In this document: one piece after another, positions 4,582-43,140 of the stretch | Numbering within the stretch: position 1 is the first letter of the stretch | Layout of the letters: every line of letters begins with the position of its first letter | Assembly (NCBI RefSeq): GCF_001194135.2 | Contig: NC_068986.1 | Span: 32,845,070-32,888,462, forward strand | Source: Octopus bimaculoides | Taxonomy: Eukaryota | Length of the DNA stretch: 43,393 bases | Direction of reading: 5' to 3' | Position numbers and translations under genes: made by a program | Notes under the pieces: model-generated | The model's database searches: none | Told to the model about the DNA's origin: nothing | Seen by the model: only the letters and a program-made list of their open reading frames with translations

Positions 4582-4627
4582 GACAAGTTGCTATATCTAT
4601 TTACTTGTTTCATACATCTTGGTGTGT

Positions 4628-4724
4628 GGAGGCGCAATGGCCTAGTGGTTAGGGCAGCGGACTCGCGGTCACGGTATCGCGGTTTCGATTCCCAGACCGG
4701 GCGTTGTGAGTGTTTATTGAGCGA
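4628..4724 (+). mobile_element. SINE family B, tRNA-like head only
   Basis: ggaggcgcaatggcctagtggttagggcagcggactcgcggtcacggtatcgcggtttcgattcccagaccggg with A/B-box-like motifs; near-identical to the heads at 15995 and 30319; similarity stops after about 97 bp. Confidence 0.85.
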
Positions 4725-5275
4725 TAAGAAAATGGAGGGAGTAGGTGGTATTCATCAACTTGCAGACATTGTATAGTGTCAATTCACATGTTTATGTGTT
4801 TACTAAAAGGACAATAATAACAATATACAAACACATGTGACATATCATTTCATATCAGTAATTAAAAAATGACATATAGTGACAGAAAATGGGATAATGT
4901 CTTATAGTTGTTTCAGTCTAGGGTGACATGTCTCATTTTATCTTTATCACTCCAGTAGACTGAAGTAACCAATAGATGAAATAGAGGTACATGGACGATT
5001 CTCTAGGCTTCTTCAGAGATTTTACAAAGTTCATAAAGTTAAGTTAAAAATATAAAAAAACGATAAAAACCCACATATATATGCATACTTTAACATATAC
5101 ATAGATATACATAAATAAACATAAATACATAAATACATATATGTACATTCACACAAATGAACCAATTATTATTGTTATTATACATGAGGAGGAAACATAT
5201 ATACACATACATACATACATACACATATGTATACATAAACATTTCCGTACAGACATGCTCATTGGTACTTACTTG

Positions 5276-6834: not shown

Positions 6835-7167
6835 GGAAAAGAGAAAGAGAGAAAGAGAGAGAGAGAGAGAAAGAGAAAAAGAGAGAGAAGCAAACTTAGC
6901 TGGATCATTTCTTGAAAAATATGTAGCTTCGAGGTCGATTTCGAGGCGCAGAACCTTCGGCTGAAGCTAGCCTCGGGTTAAACTGTCTTTGAACAGGGGT
7001 CTGCTGCTATAATCTCGGATTGTGAGTGAGGTTTGGTTGCTAAGAACTGTGAAGGAAACGTCCTGTGTATATATATATCAGGTGATCCTTTGATCCTTAT
7101 AGAACAATGGTAATGTTTATGCGCAGTTATCGTAACCTTTGTGACGAGCATATACATATCCTTATGG

Positions 7168-7316
7168 TATGAAACCTTTCTACTATAGGCACAAGGTGGN
7201 NNNNNNNNNGGGGGGGTGAGTCGATTACATCGACGCCAGTGCGGAACCGGTACTTAATGCATCGACCCCGAAAGGATGAAAGGCAAAGTCGACCTCGGCG
7301 GAATTTGAACTCAGAA
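7168..7316 (-). mobile_element. SINE family A, 5'-truncated
   Basis: Minus strand ttctgagttcaaattccgccgaggtcgactttgcctttcatcctttcggggtcgatgcattaagtaccgg...gtcgatgtaatcgactcaccccc; B-box-like gagttcaaattcc. Confidence 0.8.
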
Positions 7317-7519
7317 TATATGCTTTTAAATTCCAGTACTTATTCTACCGGCATCTTTACCGAATCGCTAGGTTACGAGGCTGTAATCAAATCATCATCG
7401 CTTGCCAACTGATGAGACAATAAACCATATACAATGATATACACAAAGATACACATGCACACACATGTGAGCGTGTATATATGTGTGTATGTGTTTACAT
7501 TAGCTCATCAAATCGACGT

Positions 7520-7689
7520 TATCTGAGCAGTTGCAAGGTGTACAAGGCGTCAGATGTCGAAATGATTGTAGACCAAATGTGACATAAGGTGTTTTAATCA
7601 AGAGCACAACGCACCACCCGGTATAGGAATTGAAACCTCCATGTAGCAGTTGTGAATGCCATGCCCAAATCAATAGGCCATGCGTCCTT
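7520..7689 (-). mobile_element. Decayed SINE family D
   Basis: Minus strand gcatggcc...gaggtttcaattcctataccgggtggtgcgttgtgctcttgattaaaacacc, similar to the copy at 15799-15950. Confidence 0.5.
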
Positions 7690-7699
7690 ACGTATACTC

Positions 7700-7944
7700 T
7701 CTCTTCTACTTGTTTCAGTCATTTGACTGCGGCCATGCGGGAGCACCGCCTTTAGTCGAGCAAATCGACCCCAGGACTTAGTCTTTAGAAGCTTAGTACT
7801 TATTCTATCGGTCTCTTTTTGCCGAACCGCTAGGTTACGGGGACGTAAACACGCCAACATCGGTTGTCAAGCGATGGTGGGGGGGACAAACAGAGACACA
7901 CAAACACACATGCATACATACACACACACACACACACACACACA
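7700..7944 (-). mobile_element. SINE family C, 3' half (runs into a gap)
   Basis: cttgtttcagtcatttgactgcggccatg...ttagtcgagcaaatcgaccccaggac...gccgaaccgctaggttacggggacgtaaacac, near-identical to 22190-22560. Confidence 0.85.
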
Positions 7945-10445: not shown

Positions 10446-10514
10446 CCCGTCGTAGAGATACACGTGTGTGATTAAACGGGTAAAGACCGTTGTTTTGCTG
10501 TAGATGGCAAAATT

Positions 10515-10887
10515 GGAGGCGCAATGGCGCAGTGGTTAGGGAAGCGGACTTGCGGTCGACTCCCAGACCGGGCGTTGTGAGTGCATACTAAGCGAAAACA
10601 CCTAAAGATCCGCAAGGCTCCGGCAGGGGATGGTGGTGAACCCTGCTGTACTCTTTCACCACAACTTTCTCTCACTCTTACTGCCTGTTTCTGTTGTGCC
10701 TGTAATTCAAAGGGTCAGCCTTGTCACACTCTGTGTCACGCTGAATATACCCGAGAACTACGTTAAGGGTACACGTGTCTGTGGAGTGCTCAGCCACTTG
10801 CACGTTAATTTCACGAGCAGGCTGTTCCATTGATTGAATCATCTGGAACCCTCGTCGTCGTAACCGACGGAGTGCCAACTAGCAAAC
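10515..10887 (+). mobile_element. SINE family B, near full length, with target-site duplication
   Basis: Aligns end to end with 15995-16376 and 30319-30702; 11-bp direct repeat agatggcaaaa at 10502-10512 and 10888-10898. Confidence 0.9.
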
Positions 10888-11627: not shown

Positions 11628-13940
11628 ACTCCATACAAAGACGTGCCCTTGTGCATTGTGCCAATATGCGTTGTTGGCGTTGGTATCGTTTCCACTGTCG
11701 GTACTGGTAGAATGAATTTATTTTACTGCTGTAATGGTATATATATNNNNNNNNNNNNNNNNNNNNNNNNNNNNNNNNNNNNNNNNNNNNNNNNNNNNNN
11801 NNNNNNNNNNNNNNNNNNNNNNNNNNNNNNNNNNNNNNNNNNNNNNNNNNNNNNNNNNNNNNNNNNNNNNNNNNNNNNNNNNNNNNNNNNNNNNNNNNNN
11901 NNNNNNNNNNNNNNNNNNNNNNNNNNNNNNNNNNNNNNNNNNNNNNNNNNNNNNNNNNNNNNNNNNNNNNNNNNNNNNNNNNNNNNNNNNNNNNNNNNNN
12001 NNNNNNNNNNNNNNNNNNNNNNNNNNNNNNNNNNNNNNNNNNNNNNNNNNNNNNNNNNNNNNNNNNNNNNNNNNNNNNNNNNNNNNNNNNNNNNNNNNNN
12101 NNNNNNNNNNNNNNNNNNNNNNNNNNNNNNNNNNNNNNNNNNNNNNNNNNNNNNNNNNNNNNNNNNNNNNNNNNNNNNNNNNNNNNNNNNNNNNNNNNNN
12201 NNNNNNNNNNNNNNNNNNNNNNNNNNNNNNNNNNNNNNNNNNNNNNNNNNNNNNNNNNNNNNNNNNNNNNNNNNNNNNNNNNNNNNNNNNNNNNNNNNNN
12301 NNNNNNNNNNNNNNNNNNNNNNNNNNNNNNNNNNNNNNNNNNNNNNNNNNNNNNNNNNNNNNNNNNNNNNNNNNNNNNNNATATATATAAGCATATATGA
12401 CACTTCGCCCCGCTCATTCATTTCTCCCATTAACGATTTACCATTATTTATTCTTCAACAGTTTGCCTGCCTACCTCTACATTTATCATTCACTATTTCA
12501 AGTGCCCGATTCAATTTTAATTGCCATGCTTCTCATGGATCTTTCTGAGATACTTCGATATTATTCGATGCGTAGGCATGTTTTCCAATGATTTTTCTGT
12601 TCATCTTATTCTTCTTTTAATGGTGTATATTGGTTGGTTTCTACTTTATTTTCGAGTCGTATTCATTTTTACGATAGAATGATACATATAGATATTACTG
12701 ACACTCCCTCCCTATATACACATATGTGTGTCTATAATTAACGATATATAAGTGTGTGAGTGTCTGTTTGTCTGTGTGTTATACGTATATGTATATATAT
12801 ACGTGTATATGTGTACGTAGATATGTAATTGTAACAAACATATACACATGTGTGTATATGAATATGTATATCTATATATCTGTGTTGGTATATACTTTTT
12901 ATATGCATGCACGCACCCCCTATATATATATATATATACATTTATATATATATATATATATATATANNNNNNNNNNNNNNNNNNNNNNNNNNNNNNNNNN
13001 NNNNNNNNNNNNNNNNNNNNNNNNNNNNNNNNNNNNNNNNNNNNNNNNNNNNNNNNNNNNNNNNNNNNNNNNNNNNNNNNNNNNNNNNNNNNNNNNNNNN
13101 NNNNNNNNNNNNNNNNNNNNNNNNNNNNNNNNNNNNNNNNNNNNNNNNNNNNNNNNNNNNNNNNNNNNNNNNNNNNNNNNNNNNNNNNNNNNNNNNNNNN
13201 NNNNNNNNNNNNNNNNNNNNNNNNNNNNNNNNNNNNNNNNNNNNNNNNNNNNNNNNNNNNNNNNNNNNNNNNNNNNNNNNNNNNNNNNNNNNNNNNNNNN
13301 NNNNNNNNNNNNNNNNNNNNNNNNNNNNNNNNNNNNNNNNNNNNNNNNNNNNNNNNNNNNNNNNNNNNNNNNNNNNNNNNNNNNNNNNNNNNNNNNNNNN
13401 NNNNNNNNNNNNNNNNNNNNNNNNNNNNNNNNNNNNNNNNNNNNNNNNNNNNNNNNNNNNNNNNNNNNNNNNNNNNNNNNNNNNNNNNNNNNNNNNNNNN
13501 NNNNNNNNNNNNNNNNNNNNNNNNNNNNNNNNNNNNNNNNNNNNNNNNNNNNNNNNNNNNNNNNNNNNNNNNNNNNNNNNNNNNNNNNNNNNNNNNNNNN
13601 NNNNNNNNNNNNNNNNNNNNNNNNNNNNNNNNNNNNNNNNNNNNNNNNNNNNNNNNNNNNNNNNNNNNNNNNNNNNNNNNNNNNNNNNNNNNNNNNNNNN
13701 NNNNNNNNNNNNNNNNNNNNNNNNNNNNNNNNNNNNNNNNNNNNNNNNNNNNNNNNNNNNNNNNNNNNNNNNNNNNNNNNNNNNNNNNNNNNNNNNNNNN
13801 NNNNNNNNNNNNNNNNNNNNNNNNNNNNNNNNNNNNNNNNNNNNNNNNNNNNNNNNNNNNNNNNNNNNNNNNNNNNNNNNNNNNNNNNNNNNNNNNNNNN
13901 NNNAATGATAATTAAAATAATAATAATAATAATAATAATA

Positions 13941-14023
<83 letters not shown>

Positions 14024-14072
14024 CATCGGAAAGACGAAGAGCGCGGTGCGATTGCAATACACATTTTATTGG

Positions 14073-14111
14073 TTGAACAATATTTCGACAGGAAGTCTTT
14101 GTCGAGTTCAA
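14073..14111 (-). ncRNA. Degenerate minimal hammerhead-like motif, U3-A8 variant, in pLTR-like segment
   Basis: Minus strand UUGAAC-UCGACAA-A-GAC-uuccu-GUC-GAAA-UAU-U-GUUCAA: 6-bp stem I, 3-bp stem II, palindromic AUAU stem III; U4 replaced by C. Confidence 0.5.
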
Positions 14112-14337
14112 AATGAAAAGTGATAAATATTCAAAATTATAGGAATTCAAATCTAAAGTATGAACGAGAGCAACCAGCGTCCTCACGTTGATGGAATGAT
14201 ATAATCAGTCTCTAAGTTTCAGTTTTCAAACTGGCGAAAAGAAAAAGACAGAATAAAAAGGCGAGAAATGAAAGGTGAGTGAACATATTTGCTTTGATGT
14301 ATGAAGAGCAGTCATTTTTACTTTCGGTACAAATGTT

Positions 14338-14750
14338 ATGTGACTAACCTATTGACGCTGGGTTGATAATCGTAGCGGAAAATTTTCCTGAAATTCCAAC
14401 ACAACCAACCATTTTTTTTCTAACATAGATTCCACACTGCACACTGTTCGTTCATCACAGAAGGAACAATCATTTTTGTTTTGTCAACCACTTTTTTCGG
14501 AGATGTTTATATTTATGAATTTTTGAACTTACCAGTACCACCACAAACAGACATAATTCCTACAGTTCAACAAGTTCATATTACTAATCCCCAATTTGGC
14601 GCATATGATTGTGGGCTTTTTGTCCTGGCGTATGCATTTGAACTGATCATTGGAAATGCTCCAGAGAAGTTTTTATTTGATTACTCAAAACTGCAAGCAC
14701 ATTTGAGATCTTGCCTCGAAATCAATAAATTAGTTCTTTTCCCGAGAGTA
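14338..14750 (+). pseudogene. Ulp1/SENP-family (peptidase C48-like) cysteine protease domain, frameshifted
   Basis: M*LT..IDAGLIIVAENFPEIPTQPTI, then NNHF(+1 T)VLSTTFFGDVYIYEFLN...PQFGAYDCGLFVLAYAFELIIGNAPEKFLFDYSKLQAHLRSCLE. His 14471-14473, acidic residue (Glu) 14517-14519, Gln 14592-14594 and Cys 14610-14612 occur in the Ulp1 order. Confidence 0.85.
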
Positions 14751-15007
14751 AAGTTTTTTCAAATGTATACAAAAAACATATATGTCATTCACTTTCTATC
14801 ACCCACGCAGAAATGGATTACTCCTAGAAAGACGACTAAAAATTATAACTTCTCACATGAACGTTCAGGACAAATTTTATTACCCAATGGGTTTCATGTT
14901 TTAAGTGAAGATTTCGAGCAAAACCCAAAAAGTAATCAGGTATCTAATGAGAGTAAGACTCTGAAACCGATTGCCCGAGAAAATGTATCACACTAGAGAA
15001 TAAGTCG

Positions 15008-15775
15008 GTCATAAATTTATCTCAACTAAAACTTTAGCCCGACAATGTCTCAGTCTTGGGGCTTCGACTGAGTTTCTTCCCAAGCACTAAGAATTTCGAT
15101 AAGAATAAACTAGCTCAAGACCTATTTCAGCCACAAGCAGAAGGAATATATTTTTGAAATAACTTGTAACGAGGAGTCAGAAAACCCTATGCTTACTGAA
15201 AATAAAAATGATGATGATCGAATGAGGTATAATTGGATTGAAAAGATTCCCAGTTGGTATCCAGATAAAGTTCGGGATGGACGTTCACAAGCACTACTGG
15301 AATTTCTTGAATCATATCAGACACGCATTAGAGAAAGCCTTAAAAGAAGTGGAAAGAAGTCCTGGAATAACCTCACAAATTCCCGACGTAACGCACTCCG
15401 ACGTAACGCACTCCGACGTAACGCACTCCGACGTCCGGCTAATAACGATTCTATTCTTATTAAAATGTAGGATAAAGGAGGCGTTATCGTAATTATGGAC
15501 AAAAGTGAGTATATATCGGCTTGTGAAGATGTTTTAAGAGACAAAACTTCATATAAAGAAATACCTGTCGATCTAAACCCCGATTCCAGAAAGGAACTTG
15601 ACAAAATAATTCTGGAAATGGAGGAAAACAATTTCATTAATTAGGCCGAATCCAGGATTTACGGTCAGAAAGAATACCTATATTTTATGGTCTCCCTAAA
15701 ATACACAAAAATTTTGAAAGATTTCCTCCAATGCGCTAAATTTGCAGCGGATATGAATGTTGTACAGCCAAGATA
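15008..15775 (+). pseudogene. Penelope-like reverse transcriptase, N-terminal part, with stops and frameshifts
   Basis: VINLSQLKL*PDNVSVLGLRLSFFPSTKNFDKNKLAQDLF ... WNNLTNSRRNAL...NNDSILIKM*DKGGVIVIMDKSEYISACEDVLRDKTSYKEIPVD ... IFYGLPKIHKNFERFPPMR*ICSG, matching the PLE hallmarks NLS..L..GL.F.P, K.ADKG..VV.D and FY.LPKIHK...RPIVS. Confidence 0.9.
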
Positions 15776-15798
15776 GTGTTATTCAAGGGAAAGTGAAG

Positions 15799-15950
15799 AC
15801 ACCAGTGACGTCACAACTCATTTCTACAGGTGAGTGAACTGGAGCAACGTGAAGTAAAATATATTGCTCAAGAACACAATGCACAGCCCGGTGCGGGAAT
15901 CGAAATCTCTACCTCATAAATGTGAGCCCGATGCTCTAACCACTGAGCCG
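15799..15950 (-). mobile_element. SINE family D
   Basis: Minus strand ggctcagtggttagagcatcgggctcacatttatgaggtagagatttcgattcccgcaccgggctgtgcattgtgttcttgagcaa...: tRNA-like A and B boxes. Confidence 0.8.
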
Positions 15951-15994
15951 ACTACAAACCTGATTGTCTTTAGGTTCTATTTATCTTTTACTAT

Positions 15995-16376
15995 GGAGGC
16001 GCAATGGCCCAGTGGTTAGAGCAGCGGACTCACGGTCATAGGATCGCGGTTTCGATTCCCAGACCGGGCGTTGTGAGTGTTTATTGAGCGAAAACACCTA
16101 AAACTCCACGAGGCTCCAGCAGAGGATGGTGGTGAACCCTGCTGTACTCTTCCACTACAATTTTCCCTCACTCTTACATCCTGTTTCTGTTGTGCCTGTA
16201 ATTCAAAGGGTCAGCCTTGTCACACTGTGTCACGCTGAATATTCCCCGAGAACTACGTTAAGAGTACATGTGTCTGTGGAGTGCTCAGCCACTTGCACGT
16301 TAATTTCACGAGCAGGCTGTTCCGTTGATCGGATCAACTGGAACCCTCGACGTCGTAAGCGACGGAGTGCCAACAA
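15995..16376 (+). mobile_element. SINE family B, full length
   Basis: tRNA-like head (tggcccagtgg; ggtttcgattccc) plus the body shared with 10515 and 30319, ending gacggagtgccaac. Confidence 0.9.
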
Positions 16377-16721
16377 TATCNNNNNNNNNNNNNNNNNNNN
16401 NNNNNNNNNNNNNNNNNNNNNNNNNNNNNNNNNNNNNNNNNNNNNNNNNNNNNNNNNNNNNNNNNNNNNNNNNNNNNNNNNNNNNNNNNNNNNNNNNNNN
16501 NNNNNNNNNNNNNNNNNNNNNNNNNNNNNNNNNNNNNNNNNNNNNNNNNNNNNNNNNNNNNNNNNNNNNNNNNNNNNNNNNNNNNNNNNNNNNNNNNNNN
16601 NNNNNNNNNNNNNNNNNNNNNNNNNNNNNNNNNNNNNNNNNNNNNNNNNNNNNNNNNNNNNNNNNNNNNNNNNNNNNNNNNNNNAATTAGAAACGGAAAA
16701 CTAAGAAAAAAGAAGGCGGCG

Positions 16722-16952
16722 GCGGCGGAGGAGGAGAATGGAAGACGAGGAGGAGGAAAAGGAGGTGGAGGGGGAGGAAAAGGAGGAGGAGGACGAGGAG
16801 GACGAGGAGGACGAGGAGGACGAGGACGAGGAGGACGAGGAGGACGAGGAGGACGAGGAGGAAGAGGAGGAAGAGGACGAGGAGGAGGAGGACGGGGACG
16901 AGGAGGAGGAGGACGGGGACGAGGAGGAGGACGAGGAAGAGGAGGAAAGAGA
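16722..16952. repeat. (GAG/GAC)n low-complexity repeat with gacgaggag modules
   Basis: Read directly from the sequence; produces the poly-E/D ORF 16738-16959. Confidence 0.85.
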
Positions 16953-17517
16953 TAAATAACTAAATTAATGTATCACAGAAAATTAAACCTTTCACCTTTA
17001 CCTTACGTGTCTTGTCACTATACACAACCAAATCAATACATACATATATATAAATATGCATGGAATTATGCATGTATATATATGTACACATATGTATTAT
17101 ACCCACATTATACAGGCACACTGCGCTCTCTCCTTTTATTTTGGCATGATGTATAAGAAGGTCGATAACTAATACTTAGGCAAAACAAACTAACGACACA
17201 TCAATAAATCGAATATGTTTATCTGCTTTGATTTTAAAATCATTTGAGTTAATTTTGCAACCCCGCCATCTCCAATTTTCCCACCAATACCCCCAGAACA
17301 ACACACGCGAACACACTTACGCACGCACACGAACACACTCGCAAACACACACACACGTACACACATACACACAAACACACGCGCACACACACACATACAC
17401 ATACACACTTGCGCATTTATAACATTTAATGTGTATGTGTCTGAGTGTATGCATATATATATATATATGTATGCATATATATGTATACATATATACGTAT
17501 ATGTATGTATTCATATA

Positions 17518-42203: not shown

Positions 42204-42295
42204 TAGCAAACTCTCCACCTTAATAAAGTGATGATGATGATGACGATGATGATGATGATGATAATCACTTTTAGTCATCCATAGCCATCAATTTT

Positions 42296-43140
42296 ATGGC
42301 TATGGATGACTAAAAGTGATTTAAAACCGGAAACGGAGGCTCAAATCTGTGCTGCCCAAGAGCAAGCACTAAGAACGAATTACTTCAAATACAGAATAGA
42401 CAACACATCAGAAAGTGATAATTGCAGAATTTGTGAACAAAATGGTGAAACCGAATGGCATATTACAAGTCAATGTATACCACTAACCCAGAAAGAATAT
42501 AAGAGACGTCAAGATAATATAGCAAGGATTGTCCATTGGAATCTTTGCAACAAGTATGGATTTGACAGAGCAAAAAAGTGGTACGAACGTAAACCCGAAG
42601 GCATCAACGAAAAGGATGATGCAAAGATCCTATGAGATTTTATGATTCAATGCGACAATGAGATAGAAAATAGGAAGTCAGACATAGTGTTAATTGAGAA
42701 AGAAAGCAAACGATGCTGGGTCATAGATACAGCATGCACAGGTATACGATAAGGAAGAAAGAAAAGTCGATAGATACGACAGGTTAGCTTGGGAGGTAAA
42801 GCAGTTGTGAAGGTAAAGCTGAAAAAGGTGGTAACAGTACCAATAACTGTCGGAGCCCTAGGAACATTGAGTAAAAATCTCGAGAAGTACATGGAACAAA
42901 TAGGGCTGCAATAAGGGTGGAGCACTTGCAGAAAACAGCACTGCTTGGAACAGCTCGAATACTCCGGAAGGTACGCCAAAAATAAGAGGTGTTACCTTAG
43001 TTCACTGGTAGTGAATAGCTGACTTTGTAGTACATCTCCAGCGATAGAAGCTGTGCAAAGACAATAAGTAATGATGATGATAATGATGATGATGATGATA
43101 ATGATGATGATGATGATGATGATAATAATAATAATAATAA
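42296..43140 (+). mobile_element. R4/Dong-clade non-LTR retrotransposon, 5'-truncated: zinc knuckle, restriction-like endonuclease, 3' UTR and (TGA/TAA)n tail
   Basis: WMTKSDLKPETEAQICAAQEQALRTNY...CRICEQNGETEWHITSQC (CCHC, 42423-42476)...YKRRQDNIARIVHW...KIL*DFMIQCD...RKSDIVLIEKESKRCWVID (PD..D-type endonuclease)...VPITVGALG...LQKTALLGTARILRK; coding region ends about 42985; later frameshifts. Confidence 0.93.

Follow-up and report, generated by a model that had tools for sequence, protein, structure and literature searches.

A decayed Penelope-like element in Octopus bimaculoides from a lineage that appears to join an Ulp1-like protease to its reverse transcriptase

Anatomy and decay of the insertion

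We analyzed a 43,393-nucleotide stretch of the Octopus bimaculoides genome (NCBI RefSeq assembly GCF_001194135.2, contig NC_068986.1, positions 32,845,070 to 32,888,462 of the forward strand; hereafter the window), in which an earlier note, made from the letters alone, had proposed a Penelope-like element (PLE) carrying a Ulp1/SENP-type protease ahead of its reverse transcriptase (RT). The host DNA is animal, with many gaps and microsatellites, and its nearest database matches are Octopus sequences. Positions 14031-15784 are the remains of a single complex insertion of a canonical PLE, that is, one with a C-terminal endonuclease. By sequence, 14258-15784 on the plus strand appears to be one decayed copy of a PLE lineage with an Ulp1-like protease (Ulp1-PLE), to which we assign a probability of roughly 0.85; the figure covers identity and architecture and not the role of the protease. 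The features of the locus, including a 3' untranslated region (UTR) and parts of the element's open reading frame (ORF), are as follows.

12967-13903: assembly gap, left of the microsatellite
13905-14030, no strand: (AAT/ATT)n microsatellite, adjoining the inverted PLE 3' end
14031-14257, minus: inverted, heavily 5'-truncated element copy, ~225-nt 3' UTR only (blastn against the Octopus sinensis locus L001)
14258-15784, plus: direct PLE copy, truncated at 5' and 3' ends and decayed (tblastn; matches amino acids (aa) ~300-755 of full-length Ulp1-PLE ORFs)
14285-14759, plus: remnant of the Ulp1-like (C48, clan CE) protease, from 'YEEQSFLL..PIDAGLIIVAENFPEIP' to 'LFPRVKFF'
14453-14476, plus: His motif 'HHRRNNHF', catalytic His codon 14471-14473, in a frame different from the rest of the domain
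14493-14528, plus: 'FFGDVYIYEFLN', catalytic Asp replaced by Glu (14517-14519), followed by a deletion of ~12-14 residues
14592-14612, plus: 'QFGAYDC', with oxyanion-hole Gln (14592-14594) and catalytic Cys (14610-14612) both kept
14808-14912, plus: conserved linker motifs 'QKWITPRKT' and 'LLPNGFHVLSED', after the protease and ahead of the PLE N-terminal motifs
14960-14996, plus: frameshift (~14960-14966), then an out-of-frame stop codon (14994-14996), not the ancestral ORF end
15005-15130, plus: PLE N-terminal motif 'SVINLSQLKL*PDNVSVLGLRLSFFPSTKNFDKNKLAQDLFQ' (asterisk, stop codon, here at 15035)
15471-15503, plus: PLE 'DKGG' motif 'DKGGVIVIMDK', with a stop codon at 15468 just before it
15680-15775, plus: first part of the RT core, 'IFYGLPKIHKNFERFPPMR*ICSGYECCTAKI'; the copy stops shortly beyond it

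The inverted stub lies head-to-head with the direct copy. In a blastn comparison with L001 (CM016878.1), window positions 14063-14257, read on the minus strand, matched L001 12763-12567 at 82% identity, and in L001 this counterpart of ~200 nt is located directly 3' of the stop codon of the ORF that encodes the GIY-YIG endonuclease. Further, the segment ends at a trinucleotide microsatellite in both loci, (ATT)n in the window and (GTT)n in L001. On the basis of these two loci, the stub probably represents the element's own 3' UTR. The 5' truncation, the inverted partial copy and the microsatellite flank agree with what has been described for PLEs, which show an insertion bias for microsatellites and inverted 5'-truncated copies alongside the main copy (PMC8557442). 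No second copy of the element was found elsewhere in the window.

The protease remnant is recognizable through its relatives. An Octopus protein (P0004, UniRef A0A0L8FR10) matches window 14333-14816 with 58-60% identity, and the window His aligns to the invariant His of the motif 'HIHHNGxxHF/W'. The Gln and Cys correspond to Q110 and C116, invariant in our alignment A2, and align with 'QQMNGSDCGMFA' of SENP1; they lie in the motif 'NPQFGAYDCGLFVLAYA' (14586-14636), within a frame that ends at the stop at 14994-14996 and includes 'NPQFGAYDCGLFVLAYAFEL' (three-frame translation of 14040-15960). The earlier note had read His, Glu, Gln and Cys motifs in one frame running to 14996. All four motifs are present and the Gln/Cys frame does end at that stop, but a frameshift between ~14476 and 14493 places the His motif in another frame, and the 'Glu', which sits in 'YIYEFLN', is a substituted catalytic Asp, the residue that all intact relatives have there ('YDSLN'). 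Intact relatives also carry counterparts of the linker motifs, 'KWxxPKK' and 'NRFxxL'.

As the earlier note had observed, the VINLS motif starts at 15008, on the same strand and 11 nt past the stop, with no repeat or microsatellite between the protease and PLE halves; it lies, however, in another frame. The motif 'SVINLSQLKL*PDNVSVLGLRLSFFPS' (15005-15085) matches 'VTNLSSRxLxxxExxxLxxGLSFxPS' of three relatives (P0018, P0005 and P0016). Beyond further frameshifts, 'WYPDKVRDGRSQALLEFLE' comes next after the VINLS region and is followed by 'DKGGVIVIMDK', DKG being a conserved PLE motif (PMC8557442), and the region of the RT start reads 'IFYGLPKIHK..PPMR*ICSGY'. PLE-type N-terminal motifs are therefore present at 15005-15085, 15471-15503 and 15680-15775, and the claimed continuation into the RT holds as far as the DKGG and LPKIHK regions but not for the RT core itself, which is missing after the copy is cut at ~15784.

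The direct copy is heavily decayed. It contains seven stop codons (14345, 14426, 14994, 15035, 15468, 15642 and 15737) and at least four frameshifts, and the deletion of ~12-14 residues lies between the Asp motif and 'IIPTVQQ'. In addition, a 15-nt unit within the ORF is triplicated in frame (15383-15434, plus strand; RRNAL three times, equivalent to three overlapping 22-nt copies), of which the O. sinensis copy in L001 has a single unit. Because of the Asp-to-Glu change at codon 14517-14519, the deletion, the frameshifts and stops, and the lack of the 5' third, the RT core and the endonuclease, the window copy is dead, a pseudogene fragment doing nothing.

Protease and reverse transcriptase in one open reading frame

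We investigated the relation between the two halves with relatives of the window copy. With window 14424-14993 as the HMMER query, 509 of 1.84 billion representative proteins matched the protease piece at E<=1e-3. Thirteen of the matches are at least 800 aa long (839-1461 aa), and in all 13 the protease segment is followed by PLE N-terminal motifs and RT, with a C-terminal GIY-YIG endonuclease in 10 (jackhmmer). Pfam likewise detected RVT_1 and/or GIY-YIG in each of the seven proteins tested, and the PLE N-terminal region follows in 27 of the 34 matches that have at least 150 aa after the protease domain. Uninterrupted ORFs with the protease and PLE parts in the same order occur in at least 13 clusters separated at the 50% identity level.

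The same arrangement was found at the DNA level. Three loci from two European Nucleotide Archive (ENA) assemblies (L002 from one, L003 and L004 from the other) each have protease, PLE N-terminal region, RT and GIY-YIG on a single strand and in this order. They follow P0018 aa 226-1259 colinearly, with the same spacing and without large gaps, save one insertion of ~5.5 kb in L002. A chimeric gene model was also considered and rejected, since the long proteins fill most of their 3.6-5.4-kb ENA contigs and L002-L004 are colinear at the DNA level.

The junction in the window was resolved with individual relatives. In tblastn comparisons, P0005 (1187 aa) is colinear over aa 302-754 with window 14460-15775 (E 1.5e-59), P0018 is similarly colinear over aa 295-746, and P0023 aligns from aa 301 at 14258. 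A 91-aa sister copy (P0009; 62.5% identity to the window translation in a local alignment) runs uninterrupted from 'QKWI..GFHILSEDF..SNESKALK' into the VINLS region, 'RKYIALENKPVIKFAKLK'. Its aa 1-80 map to window 14763-14984 in one frame and its aa 68-90 to 14963-15031 in the other, so that the two window frames overlap at 14963-14984. Because P0009 reads through the junction in one frame, the stop at 14994 is a by-product of the frameshift and not the end of an ORF. Taken together, the long ORFs, the loci L002-L004 and the P0009 read-through all join both halves, and protease and PLE halves are therefore one element.

Searches with the separate pieces yielded little. A word-indexed homologue search returned one fragment (P0001) with the protease piece, a second decayed copy of the repeat that is ~70% identical to the window translation in two frames, and two matches with the PLE piece. 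The search with the PLE half led to Octopus sinensis LOC115222486 (P0002) in L001, which is 80% identical to window 15045-15774 (blastn). The match ends at 15774, and L001 runs on into the RT, with RT motifs, an internal deletion and then GIY-YIG (~12150-12520). The GIY-YIG domain with its CCHH cysteines, which lies beyond the cut of the window copy, is present in L001 and in 10 full-length relatives. As an observation on annotation, LOC115222486 (L001 10001-11958, CM016878.1) is a gene model placed on a 5'-truncated, internally deleted PLE copy.

Intact relatives are single uninterrupted ORFs of 1050-1460 aa with the following parts, in order.

Part 1: short hydrophobic leader, ending in the 2A-like motif (S/G)(I/V)ExNPGP
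Part 2: stretch of ~170 aa, poorly conserved
Part 3: Ulp1/SENP-like clan-CE cysteine protease of ~150 aa, with His-Asp-Cys triad and oxyanion Gln intact
Part 4: variable linker with KWxxPKK and NRFxxL
Part 5: PLE N-terminal motifs VxNLS.., DKG and LPKxHK
Part 6: RT
Part 7: GIY-YIG endonuclease with CCHH cysteines, without the CX2-5CxxC linker finger

The proposal of a protease-RT PLE is accordingly upheld by the intact relatives in its architecture but not in placing the protease at the very N-terminus: 180-320 more residues precede it in full-length relatives, and the protease segment occupies approximately residues 180-540 of the long proteins whose N-terminus is present. In all 14 NPGP-containing relatives, a hydrophobic stretch is followed by a 2A-like (D)P(S/G)(I/V)ExNPGP motif 17-153 residues from the N-terminus (e.g. 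P0018 aa 40-66, P0023 aa 125-157 and P0005 aa 45-72); the window copy, which starts at about aa 300, lacks this region. The motif suggests that a small leader peptide is released during translation ('StopGo'). Motifs of the 2A type also occur in some non-LTR (non-long terminal repeat) retrotransposons; nothing linking NPGP to Penelope elements was found in the literature searched.

As a measure of constraint, mean pairwise identity was calculated over 11 full- or near-full-length ORFs. The protease (0.47) is as conserved as the RT (0.49); the PLE N-terminal region reaches 0.46, the linker plus endonuclease 0.42 and the two variable linkers 0.22-0.25. Because its identity equals that of the RT and is far above that of the linkers, the protease is maintained like the core enzymes, and this conservation, rather than a ratio of nonsynonymous to synonymous substitutions, points to purifying selection. 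By their motifs, P0018, P0023, P0016 and others fit Penelope/Poseidon, with CCHH present and DKG instead of DKT. The CX2-5CxxC linker finger is missing in most; P0005 has a C-x11-C-x2-C stretch. On these motifs, the lineage would fit Penelope/Poseidon rather than Neptune, Nematis or Hydra.

Other features of the window lie outside the element. The similarity to PLE proteins stops at ~15784, and about there begin two tRNA-like sequences of the short interspersed element (SINE) type in opposite orientation, at 15785-15955 (minus) and 15994-16380 (plus), the heads of which (15886-15949 and 16006-16069) are 78% complementary. Further copies of the plus-strand sequence occur at 30318-30699 (91%), 10514-10879 (87%) and 4627-4727 (93%), and also in L001; ARAGORN called no tRNA. 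After an assembly gap (16381-16684), a long imperfect (GAGGAC/GAGGAA)n purine-rich tract at 16720-16940 reads as an acidic Glu/Asp 'ORF' (16738-16959) and is a low-complexity repeat, not a gene. Lastly, the open frame 'CRICEQNGETEWHITSQC..KWYERKPEGINEKDDAKIL' at 42285-42632 (plus) matches zf-RVT weakly (E 0.014) and resembles the C-terminal end of ORF2 from a non-LTR retrotransposon.

Identity and possible role of the protease

Although divergent, the domain is a true Ulp1-like protease of clan CE. The residues His, Asp, Gln and Cys (motif order His, Asp(-Ser), Gln, Asp-Cys) do not vary among the 34 sequences of alignment A2, nor in a second alignment (A3, 36 independent proteins) or in any aligned full-length ORF that covers the position concerned. 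A family profile compared with the PDB matched SENP1 (6.4e-9), an Ulp1-like SUMO protease (1.9e-8), SENP5, yeast Ulp1 (2.3e-6), SENP2 and SENP8, with the catalytic motifs aligned. Consistent with these matches, 30 of the 34 members matched Pfam Peptidase_C48 (PF02902) at E<=1 (best 4.5e-8). The PLE-linked member P0153, found immediately 5' of PLE ORFs in L003 and L004, scored 24.1 bits against a gathering cut-off of 20.7. The AlphaFold2 model of P0153 has a pLDDT (predicted local distance difference test) of 81.5, and its top 20 Foldseek matches in the PDB are all clan-CE proteins (SENP5, SENP1, Ulp1, SENP2, XopD, NEDP1 and others), with probability up to 1.0 and template modeling (TM) scores of 0.32-0.51. 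P0004 is itself named 'Ubiquitin-like protease family profile domain-containing protein' in UniRef.

The nearest non-PLE relatives of the protease are short ORFs with Ulp1 plus a PHD finger (25-38% identity), found at 7001-7720 and 12646-12900 of locus L005 (GCA_012263305.1) and in Paramuricea clavata (P0176). About 5 kb separate one of these ORFs from a gene carrying CxC1/CxC2 domains, a feature typical of Kyakuja-Dileera-Zisupton transposons, and this proximity hints at the donor of the PLE protease.

Several points weigh against reading 14258-15784 as a copy of an Ulp1-PLE. The protease piece of the window alone has no Pfam or PDB match, and its assignment comes through its relatives; in the window copy itself, the His is out of frame, the Asp is Glu, and the Gln and Cys are kept. 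The best Foldseek TM-scores are modest (0.45-0.5), and the P0153 model is without N-terminal helices and has a disordered tail. The 3.6-5.4-kb ENA contigs from which the full-length ORFs come may be genomic or transcript. L001, the only same-family locus with RT and endonuclease, is 5'-truncated inside VINLS and shows no protease. The placement in a clade derives from motifs and not from a phylogeny. Finally, a search for a hammerhead ribozyme in the 3' UTR of both copies was negative (no Rfam match at E<=1 in window 13900-16400 or L001 10500-13200), a test weakened by the decayed copies and the short stub; such ribozymes are not universal among PLEs, and Naiads are without canonical ones (PMC8557442).

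Live copies of the element would move in the way established for other PLEs, with nicking by the GIY-YIG endonuclease followed by target-primed reverse transcription, and the protease is probably an active accessory enzyme. We give a little less than even odds to its being an isopeptidase for SUMO or another ubiquitin-like (Ubl) modifier that works in trans in the nucleus, on proteins of the host or of the element, and could for example lift SUMO-dependent repression or modulate repair where the element inserts. We favor this role because the nearest solved relatives are SENP/Ulp1 and not viral processing proteases, and because close relatives are the short Ulp1+PHD ORFs without a polyprotein, as in DNA transposons. 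A comparable role has been put forward for the related Ulp1 modules of DNA transposons, where there is no polyprotein for a protease to cut.

Self-processing is a serious though unlikely alternative, in which the Ulp1-like domain would cut its own polyprotein and might set free either the N-terminal part or the GIY-YIG endonuclease. Adenoviruses, poxviruses and asfarviruses have clan-CE proteases that cleave polyproteins after Gly-Gly-type sites, and the N-terminal protease of NeSL-1 has reportedly been suggested to play a processing role. The whole Ulp1-PLE ORF contains only one conserved Gly-Gly (8 of 9 sequences; P0018 aa 1146-1147, 'I.GG.ATD..VIYA'), which is located ~9 residues before the GIY-YIG core, at the RT/endonuclease boundary, and is a candidate Ulp-type cleavage site; moreover, the ORF already has another product-splitting device, the 2A-like NPGP. 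However, the Gly-Gly may be merely structural to the endonuclease, the nearest solved relatives are SUMO/NEDD8 isopeptidases (SENP1/2/5/8 and Ulp1), with the viral asfarvirus pS273R and poxvirus I7L far lower (Foldseek E>=1), and the close Ulp1+PHD relatives lie outside any polyprotein. A non-catalytic module for SUMO or ubiquitin binding or for nuclear-pore docking is improbable: in its favor, the Trp beside the SENP catalytic His is Phe or Tyr ('HF' or 'HY') in PLE-linked members, but the invariance of all four catalytic residues in the 34 sequences would be unexpected for pure binding.

Two further explanations deny the linkage itself. According to the first, which we consider very improbable, the protease came from a DNA transposon of the Ginger1, Mutator, Zisupton or Crypton type that lies by chance beside, or is nested with, a PLE fragment. 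Ulp1 domains are well known in DNA transposons (PMC2836005; PMC3212892), the distant Ulp1+PHD relatives include the one near a CxC1/CxC2 gene, and L001 has the PLE part only. The last point is, however, explained by the 5' truncation inside the VINLS motif, and chance adjacency was rejected because it is contradicted by the ORFs of the 13 or more clusters and the loci L002-L004, which join both parts in the same order, and by the junction itself, across which P0005 is colinear and P0009 reads through. Consistent with its rejection, there is no terminal inverted repeat, other repeat or boundary between the halves, and around 14258-15784 no DDE transposase, integrase or tyrosine recombinase ORF and no terminal inverted repeat was found. 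The second, that the protease derives from a cellular SENP/Ulp gene, as an exon or a pseudogene, with a PLE inserted into or next to it, is scarcely credible and was rejected although UniRef and NCBI list related octopus sequences as ordinary uncharacterised proteins, because the sequence is multi-copy and decayed (P0001, P0004, P0009, P0010, P0017 and P0083 are 42-69% identical to the window translation, several aligning only across frameshifts), is distant from SENPs (13-20% identity in structural alignments) and always has PLE motifs downstream when the sequence continues.

Returning to the trans-acting isopeptidase, we tentatively propose, as a possibility well below even odds, that Ulp1-PLEs are a widespread, undescribed group that combines a 2A-like leader and a catalytically competent SUMO/Ubl protease, constrained like the RT, in one ORF. 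If so, Ulp1-PLEs would edit host ubiquitin-like modification within their life cycle, for example to escape SUMO-dependent transposon silencing.

Comparison with known systems

PLEs are usually presented as minimal, with RT and GIY-YIG. Penelope/Poseidon-type PLEs (Arkhipova 2006; Craig et al. 2021, PMC8557442) share with the elements described here the lack of a CX2-5CxxC finger, the 5' truncation, the inverted partial copy beside the main copy and the microsatellite flanks. In contrast to them, the Ulp1-PLE ORF is 300-500 aa longer at its 5' end, adding the hydrophobic leader with NPGP and the Ulp1-like protease, and the hammerhead ribozyme was not found here (window and L001). In the 2021 PLE survey, the few accessory domains listed (PHD, SAP, zf-CCHC and a Josephin-like motif) are confined to the Chlamys elements of algae and protists, and no Ulp, SENP or OTU is mentioned, so that neither the NPGP leader nor the Ulp1 protease appears in it (PMC8557442). 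More broadly, no protease-bearing canonical PLE is described in the literature searched. The suspicion that the architecture is undescribed therefore stands for this literature, and it may be catalogued in Repbase/Dfam.

The annotation of related sequences is affected. Octopus LOC115222486 and UniRef A0A0L8FR10 are transposon fragments, not host genes, and transposable-element libraries that start PLE consensi at VINLS miss ~1.3 kb of 5' coding sequence.

A parallel among retroelements is provided by NeSL and Utopia-1_TSP, nematode non-LTR elements with an Ulp1-like cysteine protease N-terminal to the RT (PMC4640811), as here. However, NeSL/Utopia elements have a restriction-like endonuclease and a non-LTR RT and are target-specific, whereas the relatives of the window copy carry a PLE-type RT and GIY-YIG; the combination of non-LTR RT and restriction-like endonuclease was not found in them. 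The protease acquisitions of NeSL/Utopia and Ulp1-PLEs were probably independent. Chlamys-1_cBra and Dualen are likewise retroelements with a cysteine protease as an accessory domain, but theirs is a Josephin-like deubiquitinase-type fold rather than clan CE, is C-terminal and occurs in algae, and Chlamys is a PLE with an N-terminal endonuclease.

The yeast Ulp1 and human SENP1/2/5/8 proteases share with the Ulp1-PLE protease the fold, the H-D-Q-C order, 'QxxxxxDCGxFA' and the N-terminal 'WLxDxxI' helix. The Ulp1-PLE protease differs from these cellular enzymes in its sequence (13-20% identity), its compact size (~150 aa), its embedding in a retrotransposon polyprotein and, in PLE-linked members, 'HF/HY' in place of 'HW'.

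The Zisupton transposon also carries an Ulp1 module. Ginger1, Mutator-like and CryptonF/S modules belong to the same protease family as that of Ulp1-PLEs; Ginger1-9_HM has Ulp1 plus PHD, for which a role in the SUMO/ubiquitin pathway has been proposed (PMC2836005), and Ulp1 domains are documented in Cryptons (PMC3212892). These DNA transposons, unlike Ulp1-PLEs, have no RT and pair the protease with a DDE transposase, an integrase or a tyrosine recombinase, the protease being most often C-terminal or encoded by an ORF of its own. If a lineage of canonical animal PLEs keeps an Ulp1-type protease under a constraint equal to that on the RT, PLEs would join NeSL/Utopia, Ginger1, Mutator-like elements and Cryptons as independent carriers, which would strengthen the case for tampering with SUMO/Ubl conjugation as a general transposon strategy and offer compact natural protease domains with which to test it.

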